The notes under the pieces are model-generated. The model was not told the origin of the DNA. It worked only from the letters and a program-made list of their open reading frames with translations, and did no database searches. From positions 372,001 through 436,000 of the forward strand of contig SMSO01000032.1 of the NCBI GenBank assembly GCA_004764695.1: DNA of 64,000 nt, written 5' to 3'. Source of the stretch: Schizochytrium sp. TIO01 (lineage: Eukaryota > Protista > Bigyra: Labyrinthulomycetes). Below are positions 1,376-12,109 of the stretch, piece after piece; position 1 is the stretch's first letter; each line of letters begins with the position of its first letter. The translations under genes were made by a program, and so were the position numbers.

Positions 1376-4300
1376 ATGACGACCTCAAACTCGACGTGTA
1401 GTGGCTCTGCGTTCGTATGGGTCGAGGCAAACCAGCTTGCGCCAACATCACTGGACTGGAGTCTCAATGGTAAATACTCGCCAGCATTTAAGCGCGATGT
1501 GCTTAACCTTGTTATTCCTGCAATGACCTTGAGCGGACTCTCCCCTCGTATGTGCAGTGATGCGGCTGTGCTTGCCATTGTTACTCTCGAGAATGGAACC
1601 CAAGTCGAGTACTCCGGTGAATGGTCAGACAGAGAACGCGGTTATATTGTAGCTGCTTTGCCGGGCTCGCCACTTGGTACTGTGGATCTCTACATCGACG
1701 ACCGCTTCATTACGTCGCTCGACTACAACCCAATTGACTCAACACTAAAATTCCACATTATTTACACAATAATCGGTGTGCTTGCCTTAGCGCTTTTCTG
1801 GGTGCTCATGTTTATGGCAATTGACGTAATACGTAGATGGTGTAAGCGTCGTCACCAGCGTAAAGCAGAAGGCTCCTCGCGTATCCGTGCAGCTAAATCT
1901 CTCCACGGAGGAGACGAGGAGGAAGAAGAAGCCGACTCCGTCTCTATCGAACCTGATAGTTCACAACAAGTAGATATGACAAACACAAACTTATTGCGTC
2001 AGGGAACTACCAAGCGCACGCCAGAAATGCAGCAGAAAGCAATCAAGGAAATCCGTGCGGCTGCACTTGTGAAATTCCGTCAATTCCTACCTGAAGACCC
2101 TATGGCCGTAGCTGTTTGGCTCGAAACTAGTGTCTGTCATCTTGAAGATTTCGAAGAGTGTTATGGCATTACGCTTTACGACATCGCGCGACAGACCCAC
2201 CGCTACCTCCTGGAGAAGTTGCGGCCGGGCGGCACCAAGAGTATGAGCTGGGATCAGCCGGACTGGAGTAACATGTCTCTCTTACAGGATGGTTACTTCT
2301 TCGTCATTGTGGTGATGGCCGAGCTTGTTCTTCAAGGTTTCACAGGTTCTGGTATTTTTACCAGTGAACAAATGAATCAGGGAGTCAAAAACGTCATGAC
2401 AATTGGTCTTGCCGTGGGACTCATTTTTGCACTACCATTTATGATGTCGATGAGTCGCAATGCATCCCCGTACCTTTACCAGCTTGTGCTGCCTAGTGTC
2501 CCTACAGTTCTATGCCGCGACCTGACAGGTGGAATCATTTGTTCATGCACGGGTGGTCTTCTTTCTTTCCTTATCTCGCTTTTTATGAAGCGATGGTTCG
2601 CTCTTGAAGCTTTTCTCGTAGCGCTGTTCTCGATTGGGTTCAGTCTTTTCATGCTCGTTGCAACAATGCTTTATCTGTTTCGAGTTCCTGACCCACATGT
2701 ACAACTTCCAGGTGGACGAAACCCTTTCTTTATGTTCTTTGTAGTAGGGATTTTGATGGTTCCGTTCATTCTCAACCAATTGATTGTGGTTTACTCACAA
2801 TATTTTTGGATTGGAATGCATGTAGCAGCGATGTTTGCTGCGGTCTTTGCAATGTGTGTACGCATCAAAATGCTGTCACGGGCATGGAACCTGTGGCTTC
2901 CTCGCCTACTAAGATTAGCGTCAGAGATGAAGGGCGGGAATATTTCTGAAAAGGTTGCAAAACGTTCTCGCGCAGATCGCGAAGAGGCACTGTGGATCGT
3001 AAACCGCAAAGAACCTGACCGGGATGAGTGGAAGCGGTACCCTGAGACAGAGAGTGGAGGGTTCTGGGAATACTTTGGAATGGCCATGGAAGATGTGCGC
3101 AAATACAATATTGGAACCCCTGAAAGACGCTCTGGCGAGCTTTTCGACGCGAATGTGAATGAAATTATCCATGGTGTTATGTACTTTGTAATCCTTGCTT
3201 TCTCGGCCGTACCGCTCTACTTTGCGCAAGGAACCTCAAGCATTGTTTCTCGCGGTGTGATGTATGCTATGATTGCTTTCCTCCTTTCCGCTGGTACTAT
3301 TGAGCTCTTTGTTGTCCGGATTGCAAATGCAAAACAGAAAGAGAATCACGAGCTGTTGATCCCAGCAAGTAAGCGAATCGTTCGATCAGTGGAGCAGAAG
3401 ATGCATCACGCCCGTCTACAGGCATACGGAGAGGTCATCTGCGACTTCCAGCTGGTGGTACTTCGGTGGTTCGTTCTTGCGACGACATGTATCTACCTTG
3501 TTGAACCATCCGCATTGTTTATCGCGTTGCCATTCTCTACAGGTTACAATCTGGTTCTCTTTGCAATGATTTCGCGCATGTTTCTAAGTGGTTATGCAGA
3601 CCGTGCTCATGTAGCTGTTGTTGTGGGTATTGCTGTGGGGCTAGTTGTTTTTGGGCTCTTTTCTCTTGTCATTTCTTTCTCTACGCAGATTGCTCCACTT
3701 GTCGTGGCCACATGCCTTGCTGTTCGTGTTTTACGTTACATGGCTTTAACTTATGCGACACTGGACAGCTCTTCATCCTCCCTCATTTCCAATATGCTTA
3801 TGGATATTTCTCGCGCGACATTTGTGCACCTCATTCTTACCATATCGACGGCAATTCTTTGCTTCTGGGGTGGCGAAGCAGCCATGCTTCAGATCAACCA
3901 GTCTTTTTTCTCGGAGGCAACTACGAAGTCATCTGTGTTGGTGTTTGTAGTAGCTCTTGTGGCAACGTTTCTGGCGAACTTTGTAGTGTATGGCTTCTAT
4001 CCATTCATGCGCTTGTTTTGTCTCCGCAGTCTGGTTGAGTGGGAAGAGCTTGTTGAGTACCGTGTAACATGTTTTCTCGGCTTTCTTGCAGGATTTGTAT
4101 ACCTCTATCTCTCTGCGCTTGCTCTAGGTGCTTTGCTCGGCTTTGTTTCTGCCACTATTATTTATGCGCATACTGTGCGCCACTTGGTCATGCAACCACG
4201 TAATACCTGGCACAACACGATTGACCCGAACGATATTCCCATGACAAGTGGTAAGCGAATTCTTGATGGTGGTGGCTTGACCCAGGTTAAGCCTGAGATC

Positions 4301-7300
4301 CGGGAGCAGCAGCTTGCTGAGAAATTAAAAAAGGGTACCATCAATGCTGTACCACTCCTGTTTGAGAATGGTGGTCTCGGTGATCAGGTTCTTGACTTCA
4401 TTGATCGCAAGCGCCACCTCTTCACGCGCAGCTCACTTTGCGCAATTAATCCAAACGCTGGAGCTACAACGAATGATGTCAACTATGATTACCGGGCAAC
4501 TGCGGAGGATGAGGAGAGAACTTTTCTTCAGGGTATTATTTTCAATCTTTTGGAAACCCTCATCTCAGAATGCCGGACTGGCAATACATTTGTCTATCTA
4601 TGTGACGCCAATGTTCTCTACCGTGAGGGCTTTGTTGCTATGGGTATTCGCCGCAAGCAAGTAAACAGTCGTCTAACTGGTGGAGCAGTAAGCAGCTTGT
4701 CTAACCCTAAAACCCAGCAAGCTGCACAAGCAGCTACGGAATCTACAGGTCAGCGTGGGTTAATGGTGACCAAGAATGGCACCACATGGCGAGCTTCTCC
4801 ACTGTGGCGTGAACAAGCGACTAATCGCTTGAATATTTACATTGGTGTTGATCCGTCTCTGCTACGGATGCGTGATCAAACTCTGCCTGACCAAGAAGAA
4901 AGTACTGACATGGCACTAGGTCGCATTGCTGAGTGCATGTTGCACGAATTTGTCGAAGATAATACACGCAGTCACTCGCTTGCTGTTGTGTCTGAGCTTG
5001 CGATGTTAGAGGCACGCCGAGATGGTTTCTTGCCGCGTACAACTCGCTGGCAGCTGGAGCGCATGGCGCACACCCGTCAAGATCGTCTGAAGCACATCTT
5101 CGAACAAACTGAGTCTGAGGTAGAACGTCGAAATGCTAATGCGAAGCGATTACCCGTTGGCTGGCGTTTTGATAAAACTTCCTGGGTTGAAACATGCTCT
5201 GTCGAGAAGGAACTTGCTTTAGAAATTGGTGACTACTGCGAGACCTTAATACGCACATCGTCAAGAGCGTCCTTTTTCAGATTGTGTCATCTCGACTTCT
5301 ACCGCTGGGCTCATGCGTGGACTGCCTCTTCATTTCGTCTTTGGTACATTGGTTTGCGTGGAGACATGCAAGTGCATCGTGAGGTTTGCGCCGACCTTAA
5401 ACACAGAGGTATTACTCCTGGAGTATTAAGTTCTTTCTACTTGCTCCTGTTGGTGAACAGATACCTAGCACATCCTTTATTTGAGGCAAATATTAAAACC
5501 TTTGCATGGTCTTGCACACCTCTTTATTTGCAAATGAAACATCGTAGTGCTCGTGGAGCACTCAAACCAGCCCACCCTTCTCTCAAACTGGACGATCCAG
5601 CAGTTTGCAAAGCGCTTCTTAAATTGAGGCCTGAGGCTCGGCCAACCTTGTTTGAAGTTCATGAGGTCAAAGATGACGGGCAGACTATGGTACCAGGAAT
5701 GTTGACGAGTATCATTGATGAAATGATCCTTATTCGTCACCCGGAGATCAAGCCATACTGGAAGGAACGCTGGCAAATGTGTCGTGGTAAATTGCCTTTT
5801 CTCAAGTTTTCTCGAAACACTGAGCGACTTGTGGTCAAAATTTTGCACCCACCCTCCAAAACTATGGAAAAAACAACGCTTGCCCATACCCCGCAAGACC
5901 TTCTCATCATGGGTGGTGCAAATTCTAGCCACAATACGATCTACCCAGCTCGTCCCGATAAGGTAGACGTCGTAATCGATGCTTCTGCTACGCTCTTCTA
6001 TGTGTCTGGTGGTGTGACAACTTGTCTCATGCAGCTCATTAACCATAAGGGTGTCAACCAGGACTTCAATTTGCATGTTCTCGCAGAGGTTGCCTCGAAT
6101 GCCATTCCTCGCATCGCTGCTCCTACACCCTGCGTTGCCTCAATCCACCCTATTCCTCTCCATGATGTAACAAGCTCCCCAGAGTCTTCTATTCACTCGA
6201 ACAGGCCCTACTATGATCTGGCGCTTCGCAAAGAGCGCACAACTACGTGGGTATTGCGTGCTCGCTTTCACCCCTTGCTTCGCGAGCTTATTCGTGGCTG
6301 CTGTGAACTGCAAGGTGTAGATGATCGATCATCGCAAGGTCAATGAATACTTTTCTGAGGTGGTTGTTGCTCTTTATGAGTTCTTTGAGCAGTATGATTG
6401 GAATACGGCCTGGACCGACGGTCTGACTTGGCGCGTATGGGTACAGACTTGGCTCACTATATTGGAAGAAAAGCCTAAGTCTGTGCAACGCCTGTGGTTA
6501 CCATCTCTGCCAGGCCTGCAAGAGTCCCTGATCTTCTTTTCGCAGACGCTGCGGTCTCTATGCTGCGAACTTCCACGCGCTGATCTATACCACTCATCCC
6601 ACCACGGTATTGGTGCGCTAAAGGCAATCGTGCATAAGCAGCGATTCAAATCTCGCGTCATTGTATGGGATCATGGAATTTTACTTCGCGAGCGTTTGGA
6701 TGCTTTGTGTGCAGATGATTGTTTGCTAAACCCCTTCACGCGTAACGCAATTATTGGTCTAACTCGCCTTTCGGCCCGTTTGGTCTACAACACGGCAGAC
6801 TTAATTTGCCCTTGTACAGATACCAACATGTACAGATCATGGATTTGTCTCATTGCTGGTCGCCCATCCCACGGCCAGTTTGCCAAGCGTATTAAGCCAA
6901 TTTCGAACGGTACAGAACCTCTCGATGGTCAGCTGCAGTACAAGCCAATCGAGGGTTTCTTTGAGAGTCCTGCGCTTAACGAGGCTACAGGACCGGTGCA
7001 TGACCCGGACCATGTGCATGCTGTTGCCTTGTCCCATGTCCTGAGAATCAAGGACATTGTCAATGCCATCAAAGCTGCCCATCACATTGTCCACGTACGT
7101 GGAATGACTGTGTATCGCCTTCACATTTTTGGTGGTCTTGACAAGGATCCCAAGTATACATCCGAGTGTAAACAAGCTATCCATGATCTAAAGTTAGAGG
7201 AGTATGTTGTGTTGCACGGTCTGGGTGCAAAGCTCGTTGTACTCGGCAAAGCGGATATCTTTATCAACTCCTCCTACAGTGAGGGTCTTCCGATGGCTGT

Positions 7301-8624
7301 TCTTGAGGCCGAAATGGCTCACCTTCCCGTTTGCTGTACCGATGTTGGTGGATCCCGTCAGGCAGTCCCAGACGGTCGCTCCCGAGCACCTCCTCGTGAT
7401 CCAGTCAGTCTGGGTAATGCTCAAATTCTCACTTTGTGTGGCTACATTAATGAGACAGATGACAGCAAGTTGAATGATCTTGTCTTGAGTGACAAAGCTC
7501 GCCGTGGCCGTGAGCGCATTGGTGAGGATAACTATACCCTAGTGATGCGGAACCATCAAGAGGATGATACCTATGATAAGCATCACGATGTGATGTTGCA
7601 GTATGCTACAGCACTTGAGGACCCCACAGGCGTAAAATTCAACCCACCCCCGTACAGTGTGAAGGTCTTTAGTCCAATTAATGTGCAGGTACCCACTACA
7701 GGCCCTTCAAGCGAGGTCAGGCGGCAACGGCAAAAGGCCAAGCAGGCGGCAAAGAAGAAAAAGAAGACAAAGAGTGAGAAGCAACGGGTCAGTGGTCATC
7801 AGAGCATAGCATCTTCGCAATTCTCCTTGCCTAAGTCTATTACAAGTAGCTTGTTCCGCCGTCAAGACTCCTCGCATAGCCACATGACCGATGATGACGA
7901 TGATGATGTGGAGGACGATGAGGACATCGAGCGTGGTGCTGGCGACCGTGACAATGGTACGCCTTTGGATGACCTCACGCCTCGTGTTGTGCAGCGCAGC
8001 GCAATGGCTCTGGATATGGATTACCTTCATAATGTCAGGAATGGCTCACACCACCCTGATGTAGAACTTTCAGCAAGCGATGCTGAGGCCATGTACGGCC
8101 GTGCTCAGCGACTTTCCTCGACCACTGCTTCTTCTGCAAACGTATCATTGCGCAGGCCGGTCTCCACGATGTTCGCTGTGTTCCGTACATCTGCAGATGC
8201 CTCAAGCATGCCGAGTCGAAAGGATGATATTCGGCCGGTGACTTCAAATGCTTCTGCACCATCTCGATCCAATGACGTTCCACCTTCACAACAATCGACA
8301 CTGCAGCGTGCTGCTGAGCTGCTTGATATTGATGACGACGATGCATCACACGCAACAAGAGGTTCCGCTTCACGCATCAGCGCAGGCCTTCTTTCACTAT
8401 TTCGCACATCAACTACATCCCATCATAAGGAAGACAAGCAGCGTAAGCAGGAGCAACCATCTGCCCACGTTGGCCCTGATCAGCCTACAACGCAAATGAC
8501 CATCCGCACTCGCCGAAACTCTGAAGAGTCTGTCGATTTAGAGCGAGGAATCTACACATCTTCGCACCATGGTGGCAAAGGAGAAGATGACTATGATGAC
8601 TCTTCTTCTGATGACGGCCACTAA
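1376..8624 (+). CDS. Giant polytopic membrane protein (PelG-like exporter region) fused to a C-terminal PelF/DUF3492-type GT4 glycosyltransferase; Gtb3-like exopolysaccharide synthase, about 2,400 aa. Reading frame is broken (+1) at 6321-6346.
   Basis: ORF 1376-6346 has many hydrophobic helices and ends in DVVIDASATLFYVSGGVTTCLMQLI, which resembles the PelF N-terminus (EGTYPYVSGGVSSW). ORF 6321-8624 continues with IVWDHGILLRER (PelF LTEHGIYxRER) and the GT4 E-x7-E motif SSYSEGLPMAVLEA...TDVGG, followed by a disordered tail. Confidence 0.85.
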
Positions 8625-9275
8625 ATTATTTGTCTTAGTGAAGTCTTTATAATACCAATTTTGTGTTTGTGTTATTCAATCACGCTGCATGATACTGCGC
8701 CTTTGCTTATTCTGCTTTGTAGCCGGAACAATCACACATGACACCCTCAATCCCTAAGTATGTGCGAACAGATGCCTTCTTATTTACTGTTGACCCACTC
8801 ATCAACTCAATGTGTGTGTATAATAAGTTGTGATTTAAGACAAACTCCATGGCAGGGGAGCTCAAGTTGAAGTCGTTTTTATTGCTCATCAAGGTCATTC
8901 CTTAAAAGAGAAATGGATGATGAGACTCGGGAATCGCATCAATATTCATTTTAAAAGAGACACACATATTTAATTGATTTTTTAAAAAAATTGAAGAAAC
9001 CTTGGAGGCAGAAATGCACTACACAGACGCTTGCGTCTATCCCTACTTTGTCTACATACCAGACGAGAAGTCTAGACGGAAGTACACAGAACATATCAGG
9101 ATTGAGTAGTAGGCATAAAACAACGCCTCAGTTTGGCATCTTCTTTCGCCCATTTAAAAAATAAAGGGAAAGAAAACAAGGTAAGAACAGATGAATTTGA
9201 GAGCGCCGTTGTGCCACTTAAGTCATCATTCGATGACTTCAGTCGCCTAATAGGACCTGAAGACTTCACACGGGC

Positions 9276-11523
9276 TTAGTAGGTGTCGACCTTGGTGGTA
9301 AGGGCCTCTTCGGTAGCGGAAGGACGAGCTAAGCACGACGCAACGAGCACAACGATGCCGCCAATGACGGAAAGTGCAATGCCAACAAGAGCCTCGATCT
9401 GGCCAGTGTAAGCTGCGTAGTATGTCTCGTAGTCCACCTTGGTGCCACCAACCTCCTGGTACACAGGGGCACTGCGCACAACGAGAAGAGCCGCGAGAAG
9501 AAGCACTCCTCCAAGGATAGAGAATGCACCTCCAACTACAGCGACAATAGTCTTGTTGAGAAATGCAGCAGCGACACTAACAATGACTCCGACAAACATC
9601 ATTGCAATCGAGGCGGCTAGAATCTTTTGGGCCTGGGAGAACTTCTCACGATCAGTGTTGTCATCATTGCAATCTGCGATGGTCTCATTGCGAGTAGACC
9701 CAGTGCCAGGGAGCGCAGTCTCCACCTCGGAGATGAGTGAAGATGTTAACGAATCAAGTGTCGGATAGTTCAAGGCAGCAGCCATGGCAAGCACACATCC
9801 AGAGCGAGTGGAGACGGCAGCACATACGGAGTTTATGATCACGTTAGCCACGTACAGCCCCTCCGTAGTGGAGGAGCTTGGGTCAGAAGCAGCAGAGTTG
9901 AAGTAAGTGGCGTTGATAAAACTGCGAAATGTCATGGTGCTGTCACACTCATATGGGTAGCCGGACACCTCGATACCGCCGCAAAGAGCATAGCCAGCGC
10001 TATCGAGATCCTCAGGAACGACACCCTGCTCACCACCACTCGGGTTAAGGAGGTAGTTCTTGAGCTCAGTGGTGGTCATCTGCAATTGAGAACCAGTTTC
10101 AAGGATGACCTGGAACGCAGGCAGAGCAGCATAAATGGTGCTCAGAAAAGATTCATCAAGATTGTAGCTGGCGAGAAGGGTGGCACCAAGCTGGCTGAGA
10201 ACATCCTCTGTGGCCACGGCCTTCAAAAGGTCAAGGTAGGTGCAGTCCACGGGAGCAGCACCTGCAATTGAAGTACTCTCAAAGAGATCAGAACCCGAGG
10301 CAGCCTCGCAAAGAGGGTAAGGATCCGTATCGTTGAGCCGAGGGAAAGGAGTGAGGTCGATGGTTCCACAGTCATCCAGGACACCGGAGTCACAAACATA
10401 GTACAGCACACCAACGGCCGGGACTAGGGAGTAGTCACTGGCACTATTGCTCACAGTATTCACAGTGGCAATAAAGCTGGTCAAGTTAAAGGATGTGCTG
10501 GTGAAGCCATTAGCATACTGGGTTAAAACACCTCCATAAATTTGGCTCCCGATGTAAGTGTAGTTGTCAGCGGAAAGAGCTTCTGCCGACAGAGCACCGT
10601 AGTAAAGAGACGCAATGGTTGTCATAACTGCGGTTACCAGCAGTTGCGCCAGAAACTTTAACGGTAGTGTTTGTGATGGAATCGTAGAGGTTAAAACCGC
10701 TCGAAAAGTTAGAAGCTTCTCCAGAGTAAACCGCATAGATAGAGAATAGAAAGTCTTCACTCAGGTAGTTACCGGCAGATCCTGCGATACTGGATGTAAA
10801 GATATTTCCAGCGTTTACGCCGCTTGCTAGACCATTGCTAGCAAGGTATACCTCAGCGCCAGAAGAACAAGCAGCAGTCGAAGTACAGCTCAGCTTGTCA
10901 GAACAACTTGCACCACAATACGCATTCTGGATACTGGAGATCGTCGAAGCGACGCCATGCGCAAGATATGCTGCACCACCAATTTGTGATTCCACACTAA
11001 GAACATTGCTATTAAAATCATCGTTGATGTAGGAGGAGAGAGCTGTGGGCACGCCATCAAGAGCAATGGTCAGAAGAGAGGCATATTCTTCGTAGCTAGA
11101 TGTAAGACTTGTGTCAAGGGAAGAAAACACGGTCTCAGTAGCATATTCTACAGCTGCGACATCAAAGACGCCGCCATCTGCGTAGAACTCTTCACACGTA
11201 GTAAAATTTTCCTTAGTAAGACCAACTGAAGAAAGAGCACCACCAAAACCTTCTTGGGCCGGGAAAAGTGGCCAGAATTCTGTGACAGGAGTCGTCACCT
11301 TTTCAAACACAGAATAGCTTGATTCAGCAGCAGAGCCAACTGTACATGCCGGGTCGAATGTGGCGGTGAAGAGTCCGAGAGTGCCTAAGAATTCCTCAGA
11401 GCACTTATCGATTGGGGGAAGCTCAACAACCACGAAATTTTCGCTGACGGCCACAACAATGACAATAATTGCTGCCACGAGACTTAGCGTGGAGCCTGCA
11501 AGGCCCACGATTTTCTGCACCAT
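9276..11523 (-). CDS. Claudin/PMP22/SUR7-topology 4-TM protein with a very large Cys-containing extracellular loop, about 750 aa. Reading frame is broken (+1) near 10630-10670.
   Basis: ATG at 11523 (MVQKIVG) is followed by TM1 and a GLF...C motif. ORF 9276-10760 supplies three C-terminal TM helices and has the same Ser/Thr/Tyr/Ala-rich composition. The two ORFs overlap and are offset by +1. Confidence 0.75.
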
Positions 11524-12109
11524 CTTTTTCCTTACTCCTTCGTATAAATTAACAATAAGAATAACCACTACACAAAACAATTAGCAGTGGCTTATTGTCT
11601 CACTCGCTAGGATTTTGTTTTTCCTCGATTGGGTGTTTCGAGTTTGCTGGGACCCTCGTGCTGCCGAGCTGCACAAGAGTTTTTATCACATTTACTTTTT
11701 TTAAAAGCATCTCTAATAAATAAATAAAAATAAAGATAAAAATTCTCCACGGTATGGCTCTTCAATAGAATCCCAAGCATCCAAAAAATGCACACGGGAA
11801 TAGAAAAGAAAAGGTTTGGCAATTTTAATTTAAAATAGAAATTAAAAAAAATAAAGTGTAGCAACTCTGATACCAATGCTTCACCAAACAGTCAAAAATT
11901 GACTTTGTCAAGGAGAAGATGCATTGACTCTGAGCGCATTTGCAAGATGAAGGAAGGAAATGAATATGGAGGATCATTTGTGTTATGTTACACAGACTGA
12001 AATTCCTCAGCATAAAAGGTGCTCACTTAAGCTCCTGCTTATTTTATTTTGACCCCTAATGTATTTTTAAAATATAAAACAACAATTTTTGCCAACCACA
12101 CTATCCATA

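Follow-up and report, generated by a model that had tools for sequence, protein, structure and literature searches.

Can a single eukaryotic polypeptide both assemble a polysaccharide of the bacterial Pel or fungal galactosaminogalactan (GAG) type and move it across the membrane? The question is raised by a gene at the edge of a 64,000-nucleotide stretch of the genome of the thraustochytrid Schizochytrium sp. TIO01 (contig SMSO01000032.1, positions 372,001 to 436,000, forward strand; hereafter the window, whose numbering is used throughout), for which a preliminary description, made from the letters alone, had proposed a membrane-bound synthase-exporter carrying a domain of glycosyltransferase family 4 (GT4). 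The analysis presented here leads us, on balance, to favour a single-chain, membrane-embedded polysaccharide synthase-exporter of Gtb3/Pel type. The gene is a divergent, compact member of a known but barely characterised family of giant GT4 proteins.

Gene integrity and domain composition

In the present assembly the gene appears as two plus-strand open reading frames (ORFs) that lie head to tail in different frames (1376-6346, 1,656 aa, and 6321-8624, 767 aa). At their junction the window reads ...TCG CAA G|G TCA ATG A..., with a single extra base in 'CAAGGTC' (6336-6339) and a stop codon at 6344-6346, after the frameshift. A public protein, P0001 (2,415 aa, from an 11-kb Logan contig), covers both ORFs uninterrupted, with ...RSSQVNEYF... 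spanning the junction, and shows five substitutions against the translated window; it was taken as the full-chain sequence wherever the whole protein was needed, and residue numbers refer to it. Contigs from four independent runs, belonging to four studies, were aligned to window positions 3000-8900, and every run has one base fewer at the junction, at 6338 in two of them (CAA-GTC) and at 6336 in the other two (CAG-GTC); two of these runs are guessed to be RNA, which is not proof of transcription. The frameshift caused by the surplus base in 'CAAGG' (6336..6339, +) is an assembly artefact and the gene is intact. Because all four runs are without one base and both alleles encode Gln-Val, the CAAGGTC of the window looks like an A/G polymorphism collapsed to 'AG' during assembly. 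The surplus base sits where two synonymous alleles (CAA/CAG) differ, and heterozygous sites may mimic frameshifts elsewhere in this assembly. An intron at the junction was considered and rejected, the sole GT..AG candidates being 22-24 nt long and P0001 and the four runs showing a one-base difference. The coding sequence of about 2,400 aa given in the preliminary description is accordingly one intronless gene of 2,415 aa (1376..8624, +) after discounting the one-base artefact, and all the motifs quoted there were recovered: FYVSGGVTT (aa 1541), WDHGILLRER (aa 1764), SEGLPMAVLE (aa 1968), EDPMAVAVWLETS... (from aa 240) and GLIFALPFMMSMSR.

An interrupted frame, with a stop at 6344-6346 directly after the shift, is also what a broken or decaying pseudogene, or contaminant DNA, would present. 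We regard this explanation as very improbable, given that the surplus base is missing from four independent runs, that strain substitutions are mainly synonymous (27 of 38 differences in 5.9 kb), that orthologues with 50-88% identity exist in other thraustochytrids including Hondaea, and that the gene lies on a 9-Mb contig amid ordinary eukaryotic genes. Among the 11 non-synonymous differences, six affect the C-terminal tail; the GT4 domain, and as much of the transmembrane (TM) domain as was covered, are free of them.

The enzymatic part of the protein is a PelF-like GT4 domain at aa 1525-2090 (5948..7646, +), which spans the artefactual frameshift and consists of a DUF3492 N-lobe and a Glycos_transf_1 C-lobe. 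DUF3492 matches aa 1538-1818 of P0001 at 51.8 bits, against a Pfam gathering cut-off of 23.3, over profile positions 9-257 of 268, and its C-terminal half alone reaches 43.1 bits in the second ORF of the window; the C-lobe is matched by Glycos_transf_1 and Glyco_trans_1_4, above the Pfam cut-off for Glycos_transf_1. Of the NCBIfam models, PelF comes first at 66-70 bits (runner-up family 44-46 bits), and with 66-69.6 bits the domain stays below the equivalog cut-off of 100 bits set for that model. PelF is also the top NCBIfam match of a chytrid relative (98 bits, nearly the whole model) and of an Aspergillus relative. Reference sequences of PelF and PelG were taken from planctomycete pel loci, and the domain shares with 13-14 planctomycete PelF proteins a Gly-rich GGV, the (E/D)HGI..RE motif, the IKD lysine and the EX7E pair, a motif of retaining GT4 enzymes. 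Residues E1969, E1977, K1892, H1766 and G1545-G1546 are kept in 152-159 of 160 aligned sequences including PelF, and the EX7E motif itself (E1969...E1977; 7281..7307, +) in 159 of them. As these signature motifs are kept and PelF is the top NCBIfam match, the domain looks catalytically competent and PelF-like, not a PelF equivalog. The assignment to the PelF/DUF3492 type made in the preliminary description therefore holds, with DUF3492 above its Pfam cut-off, PelF as best NCBIfam family and the GT4 signature, EX7E included, preserved.

The GT4 domain is preceded, as had also been claimed, by a large multi-TM region. Hydropathy indicates about 14-15 helices at aa ~300-925 with two cytosolic loops, and the domain is delimited at aa 295-940 (2258..4195, +). 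The fold predicted for it is MOP (MATE/MurJ/Wzx)-like, interrupted by a helical insertion on the cytosolic side, and it is the proposed polymer-translocation module. Segments of this region had been said to recall PelG, the membrane partner of PelF. As far as sequence likeness is concerned, this was not borne out: at E<=1 no Pfam family, PelG (PF16933) included, matches the TM region of the window protein or of 13 relatives, and comparison by hhalign of four eukaryotic TM profiles with 15 planctomycete PelG sequences gave a probability below 25% in each case. A search of the organism's own genome for PelG found none. The likeness reappears at the level of the fold class. Two AlphaFold models were computed, the first for aa 220-1000 from a 14-sequence alignment (pLDDT 61.6), the second for aa 295-940 from a 25-sequence alignment (pLDDT 73.9, pTM 0.75), and when either is compared by VIA with 48,161 PDB representatives the top 13 matches are all MOP transporters (MATE, MurJ, WzxE), the best Z being 13.3 for the first model and 14.6 for the second. 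For the second model these 13 matches have Z values of 10.7-14.6 with 354-389 residues aligned (>80% of the targets) at a root-mean-square deviation of 4.3-5.7 Å, and the next matches drop to Z 9.2 and are short partial helical bundles. Foldseek places MATE1 and NtMATE2 on top (probability 0.95-0.99, E ~0.03), and a language-model feature search (Atlas) finds PelG clusters nearest to the TM region with a score of 0.84, which lies below the trust line and serves as a lead only. PelG belongs to the MOP clan of Pfam; there is no solved PelG structure for direct comparison. From these predicted models the TM domain probably has a MOP fold, and 'PelG-like' is to be read here as a fold class, not as family membership. 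Unlike the MOP transporters it resembles in predicted fold, the thraustochytrid domain bears large cytosolic insertions and is fused to an enzyme, and neither sequence similarity to those transporters nor a Pfam match was found for any family member.

Relatives among eukaryotes and bacteria

The closest named relative is a gene model of Hondaea fermentalgiana, 88% identical over the GT4 region, and two more full-length relatives are 55% and 50% identical. This places the organism among the thraustochytrids (Labyrinthulomycetes, stramenopiles), in agreement with the protist or stramenopile origin assumed in the preliminary description. The Hondaea model, P0029 (3,746 aa, annotated as 'mRNA cap guanine-N7 methyltransferase'), combines capping-enzyme, methyltransferase and Zf_WRKY19 domains with the giant GT4, probably as the result of a faulty merger of gene models. 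An exhaustive search of representative sequences with aa 220-1400 as query recovered only 14 proteins. Eight of these are 1,900-3,400 aa long and align with the initial part of the TM region, and the ones that were identified come from chytrids and an ichthyosporean; a C-terminal DUF3492 plus GT4 was present in all three of the TM-region relatives scanned. Seeding the search with a chytrid GT4 domain extended the family to 227 giant proteins. The fungal ones come from Chytridiomycota, Neocallimastigomycota, Bifiguratus and many Ascomycota, including A. fumigatus, A. niger and A. nidulans, the others from Ichthyosporea (Sphaeroforma, Creolimax and the eukprot 'Ihof'), Fabomonas and Cyanophora, together with two eukprot proteins labelled Clim, which we read as Corallochytrium. 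A profile search of genome contigs with the GT4 alignment yielded only three loci, one of them a misbinned fungal contig and none a true PelF. Contig SUTP01000071.1 (9,574 bp, 28.5% GC), filed under a Methanosphaera stadtmanae metagenome-assembled genome, carries a near full-length giant TM-GT4 about 60% identical to that of Neocallimastix, and very probably stems from an anaerobic gut fungus, its place in an archaeal genome being a binning error.

Profile comparison reveals the same colinear architecture in proteins of 2,400-4,400 aa from chytrids, ichthyosporeans, Cyanophora, Fabomonas and Ascomycota including Aspergillus. With a profile built from the thraustochytrid TM region alone, hhalign matched the TM region of the chytrid/ichthyosporean clade at 99.8% (E 1.5e-30, 547 columns), that of the clade holding Fabomonas and Cyanophora at 99.2%, and that of Ascomycota at 96.9% (E 2e-10, 446 columns); the middle cytosolic region (aa 941-1524, about 580 aa; 4196..5947, +) was matched at 97.6%, 95% and 84%, respectively. 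Parts of this region are conserved among the giant GT4 proteins of the other eukaryotes, but neither Pfam nor PDB sequences nor Atlas gave a match to it. Because the TM, middle and GT4 regions are colinear across clades, the TM-first, GT4-last layout is, judging from these alignments, ancestral to a wide eukaryotic family and not specific to this organism. The fused arrangement pointed out in the preliminary description is thus present, but it is the common layout of a eukaryote-wide family and no peculiarity of the protist.

A FastTree phylogeny of 160 GT4 domains, in which PelF is sampled from planctomycetes only and by sequences some of which are N-terminally truncated, puts the four thraustochytrid proteins on a deep branch of their own and the other eukaryotes together in one clade (support 0.988). 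With this PelF sample, the thraustochytrid clade, PelF and the remaining eukaryotes form a trichotomy (support 0.12).

A described protein to which the family can be related is Gtb3 of Aspergillus, a transmembrane glycosyltransferase of about 300 kDa required for GAG, the size and membrane location of which have blocked structural and biochemical work (PMC9860509). That description fits the giant TM-GT4 family, and no domain-level description of Gtb3 was found in the literature searched. The likeness to a large Aspergillus TM/GT4 protein drawn in the preliminary description agrees with the colinearity found by profile comparison with giant Aspergillus GT4 proteins. The A. fumigatus protein compared, P0106, groups with A. 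nidulans AN8369, named in UniRef as the orthologue of AFUA_4G14070 and not of gtb3; 'Gtb3-like' is therefore a family-level label, well-founded in sequence terms and derived from Aspergillus proteins other than Gtb3. AFUA_4G14070 is a gene distinct from gtb3 and apparently unstudied. Ascomycota as a whole hold at least three paralogue groups of giant GT4 proteins (P0106, P0142, P0104, P0108, P0113 and P0117 in the tree), and some Aspergillus carry two.

Set beside the giant fungal GT4 proteins (Gtb3 and others, such as the AFUA_4G14070/AN8369 group), the thraustochytrid protein is likewise very large (2,415 aa as against about 2,800 aa in Aspergillus), has the same order of multi-TM region, middle region and C-terminal GT4, colinear by profile, and has PelF as best bacterial match of its GT4 domain, as they do. 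It differs in missing the N-terminal extension of about 600-1,200 aa of the opisthokont proteins, in possessing an N-terminal region of 125 aa and one extra TM helix of its own, and in a GT4 domain that branches outside the clade of the remaining eukaryotic members. With bacterial PelF and PelG (PelDEFG) it has in common a GT4 of DUF3492 type with the same signature residues, a membrane domain predicted here to be of the MOP fold class, and a putative logic in which cytosolic polymerisation would be coupled to export. In contrast to the bacterial system, the two parts form a single polypeptide, the membrane domain followed by the GT4, whereas in the sampled planctomycete loci a PelF-like frame lies directly upstream of PelG; moreover, no PelG sequence similarity is detectable, the PelF score is 66 bits against the 100-bit equivalog cut-off, and a middle domain of about 580 aa without recognised fold has been added. 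No c-di-GMP module was seen in the thraustochytrid, PelD and PelE not having been searched for.

Remaining protein regions, neighbours and candidate partner genes

The chain starts with a thraustochytrid-specific region of about 125 aa before the first TM helix (1376..1750, +), which gave no match in profile comparison with other clades. Hydropathy then shows a single hydrophobic helix, TM0, at aa 131-149 (1766..1822, +), followed by a charged linker (aa 150-235) with a basic stretch directly after TM0; since basic residues follow TM0, the N-terminal region is probably extracytosolic. A conserved juxtamembrane motif, FLPEDPMAVAVWLETSVCHLEDFEECYG (aa 237-264; 2084..2167, +), was recognised in the alignment, being invariant across three aligned thraustochytrid proteins and related to a motif in the majority consensus that includes chytrids and one ichthyosporean. 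The protein ends in a poorly conserved, Ser/Asp/Arg-rich tail of 325 aa (aa 2091-2415; 7647..8621, +).

The neighbours of the gene are a zinc-finger gene and genes for CENP-I, kinesin, SDR, ClpB, RRN3, a carboxypeptidase and LRR proteins. No carbohydrate-active gene was found in the window or in the 20 kb upstream; in particular, none of the genes of a GAG-type cluster (Uge3-type epimerase, Sph3/GH135, Ega3/GH114 and Agd3/CE18 beside the synthase) occurs there. The preliminary description was thus right that no partner lies downstream in the window, and its suggestion of partners upstream found no support within those 20 kb. The zinc-finger gene upstream of the GT4 gene is of the Zf_WRKY19 type, which also occurs in the Hondaea P0029 model, and the Zf_WRKY19-GT4 neighbourhood seems conserved with Hondaea. 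Further upstream, the 10 kb ahead of the zinc-finger gene (C31:352,001-362,000) hold no ORF of at least 150 aa on either strand. On the other side of the GT4 gene, overlapping minus-strand ORFs (494 and 337 aa) in different frames at 9276-11580 have no Pfam match; a single gene interrupted by an intron or by a second assembly frameshift could account for them.

In the whole genome (64 Mb, 37 contigs) the DUF3492 gene is single-copy. Candidate partners exist at a distance from it. Fourteen GH114 domains are distributed over about seven genes unlinked to the synthase gene, among them genes at C34:3.965 Mb, C4:0.11 Mb, C30:9.655 Mb and C3:2.10 Mb. Several of the GH114 ORFs tested carry a signal-like or anchor segment towards the N-terminus and TM helices towards the C-terminus. 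The GH114 arrays at C4:111,232-119,020 and C20:24,424-31,047 have near-identical domain scores (168.3/168.3, 129.9/129.9 and 108.2/107.8) and look like a recent duplication or an uncollapsed haplotype. A GalE-type epimerase (C33:2.935 Mb), the gene of which is split by an intron and the two pieces of which sum to 386 bits, and one membrane-anchored CE4 deacetylase (C36:0.318 Mb) are both present and both unlinked. Agd3_CE (CE18) was not found genome-wide, nor was GH135 (Sph3), the latter being a weak negative as the search gave no match in control genomes either. Of the partner genes that had been proposed for a genome-wide check, GH114 and the epimerase are therefore there, and Sph3 and Agd3 were not recovered. 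Unlike the Gtb3 system of Aspergillus, that of the thraustochytrid thus comes with no gene cluster, Sph3 or Agd3 found.

Proposed mechanism, alternatives and meaning

According to the reading that we favour, polymerisation would be the task of the PelF-like GT4 domain in the cytosol, which would link sugar units from a UDP-sugar donor, most likely UDP-GalNAc alone or together with UDP-Gal, into a chain with alpha linkages. This chain would cross the membrane by way of the attached membrane domain, of the predicted MOP fold and thereby of the fold class of PelG. Once exported, it would meet the numerous GH114 enzymes of the organism, secreted or anchored in the membrane, which would trim it, and the single CE4 enzyme, which would possibly remove N-acetyl groups. 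The analyses above show that the gene is intact, which domains it encodes, that the GT4 signature is conserved, that a MOP fold is predicted, that the entire layout is homologous to that of giant GT4 proteins in fungi and other eukaryotes, and which partner families the genome does or does not contain; processive action of the GT4, passage of the chain through the MOP-like domain, the nature of the sugar and any tie to GH114 and CE4 are what we infer from them. A product of GalNAc/GalN type is plausible by analogy with the chemistry established for Pel and GAG, and the expansion of GH114 also suggests it.

Several observations weigh against this reading. The membrane domain has no sequence similarity to PelG that Pfam or hhalign could find, and its MOP fold rests on predicted models, helical bundles being able to reach Z ~13 by their arrangement alone. 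The thraustochytrid GT4 falls outside the clade of all other eukaryotic members and is placed relative to PelF with a support of 0.12, and the Aspergillus sequences compared come from the AFUA_4G14070 group or from further paralogue groups and do not include Gtb3 (AFUA_3G07860). Neither GH135 nor Agd3 was found, the candidate partners are unlinked, and the role of the GH114 enzymes could be to digest polymers of fungi or bacteria as food. Finally, no biochemical or compositional evidence of a GalN/GalNAc polymer in thraustochytrids was found in the literature, and thraustochytrid walls are described as galactose-rich sulfated scales.

Two other functions have to be weighed in this light. The protein could be a machine for glycolipids or lipid-linked oligosaccharides, in which the GT4 builds a glycan of one or a few sugars on a lipid carrier, to be flipped by the MOP-like domain in the manner of Wzx or MurJ, for example for wall-scale or glycoprotein assembly, so that no free polymer is made. 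The flippases MurJ (Z 11.5) and WzxE (Z 11.2) do stand beside MATE among the structural matches, the structurally characterised MOP members in the match lists all move small or lipid-linked substrates, and many GT4 enzymes are non-processive; however, PelF, a component of a polymer synthase, is nearer to the GT4 domain than are the lipid-directed GT4 families, the language-model search placed PelG clusters beside the TM region and not those of Wzx or MurJ, and loss of Gtb3 abolishes a polymer according to the literature, all of which makes this function rather unlikely in our view. Alternatively, the same machinery may make another product, such as an alpha-glucan, a galactan or another hexose polymer without GalNAc, the GH114 expansion being unrelated and devoted to digesting polymers of prey or substrate. 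A GT4 sequence does not reveal sugar specificity, the thraustochytrid GT4 clade is far from the PelF and fungal clades, and Agd3 and Sph3 were not found in the genome; thraustochytrids are also described as saprotrophs that secrete many hydrolases (PMC7641610). Against it, the DUF3492-type systems characterised in the literature (Pel, and GAG if Gtb3 is of the same type) make polymers containing alpha-1,4-GalNAc, and the 14 GH114 domains, with anchor or signal-like segments in several of the ORFs tested, point to a self-made substrate; we give this second possibility a similarly small chance.

A synthase-exporter of Gtb3/Pel type would have consequences beyond this one organism. It is conceivable, and we put it forward tentatively as a doubtful extension, that single-chain synthesis of Pel/GAG type by a 'PelG-fold plus PelF' protein is an ancient, eukaryote-wide system, shared by thraustochytrids, chytrids, ichthyosporeans, Corallochytrium, an ancyromonad and a glaucophyte instead of being confined to ascomycete moulds, and that thraustochytrids make an unnoticed cationic adhesive polymer of alpha-1,4-GalN(Ac) type remodelled by their expanded GH114 set. 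If this is true, the polymer possibly serves attachment to particles or the ectoplasmic net.

For the family, the interest lies in the fact that Gtb3 is the least understood step in galactosaminogalactan synthesis. The present analysis contributes the prediction that the membrane part of the family is of MOP/PelG class and fused to an enzyme of PelF class, a range extending far beyond fungi, and a thraustochytrid version that is shorter, intronless and single-copy. What results is a defined mechanism to work with, in which one chain would polymerise and export in the manner of Pel, and possibly also a protein and an organism that lend themselves better to its study. For thraustochytrids, the gene and the 14 GH114 domains point to an extracellular polymer not yet described, which could influence how the cells adhere, aggregate and behave in industrial culture.

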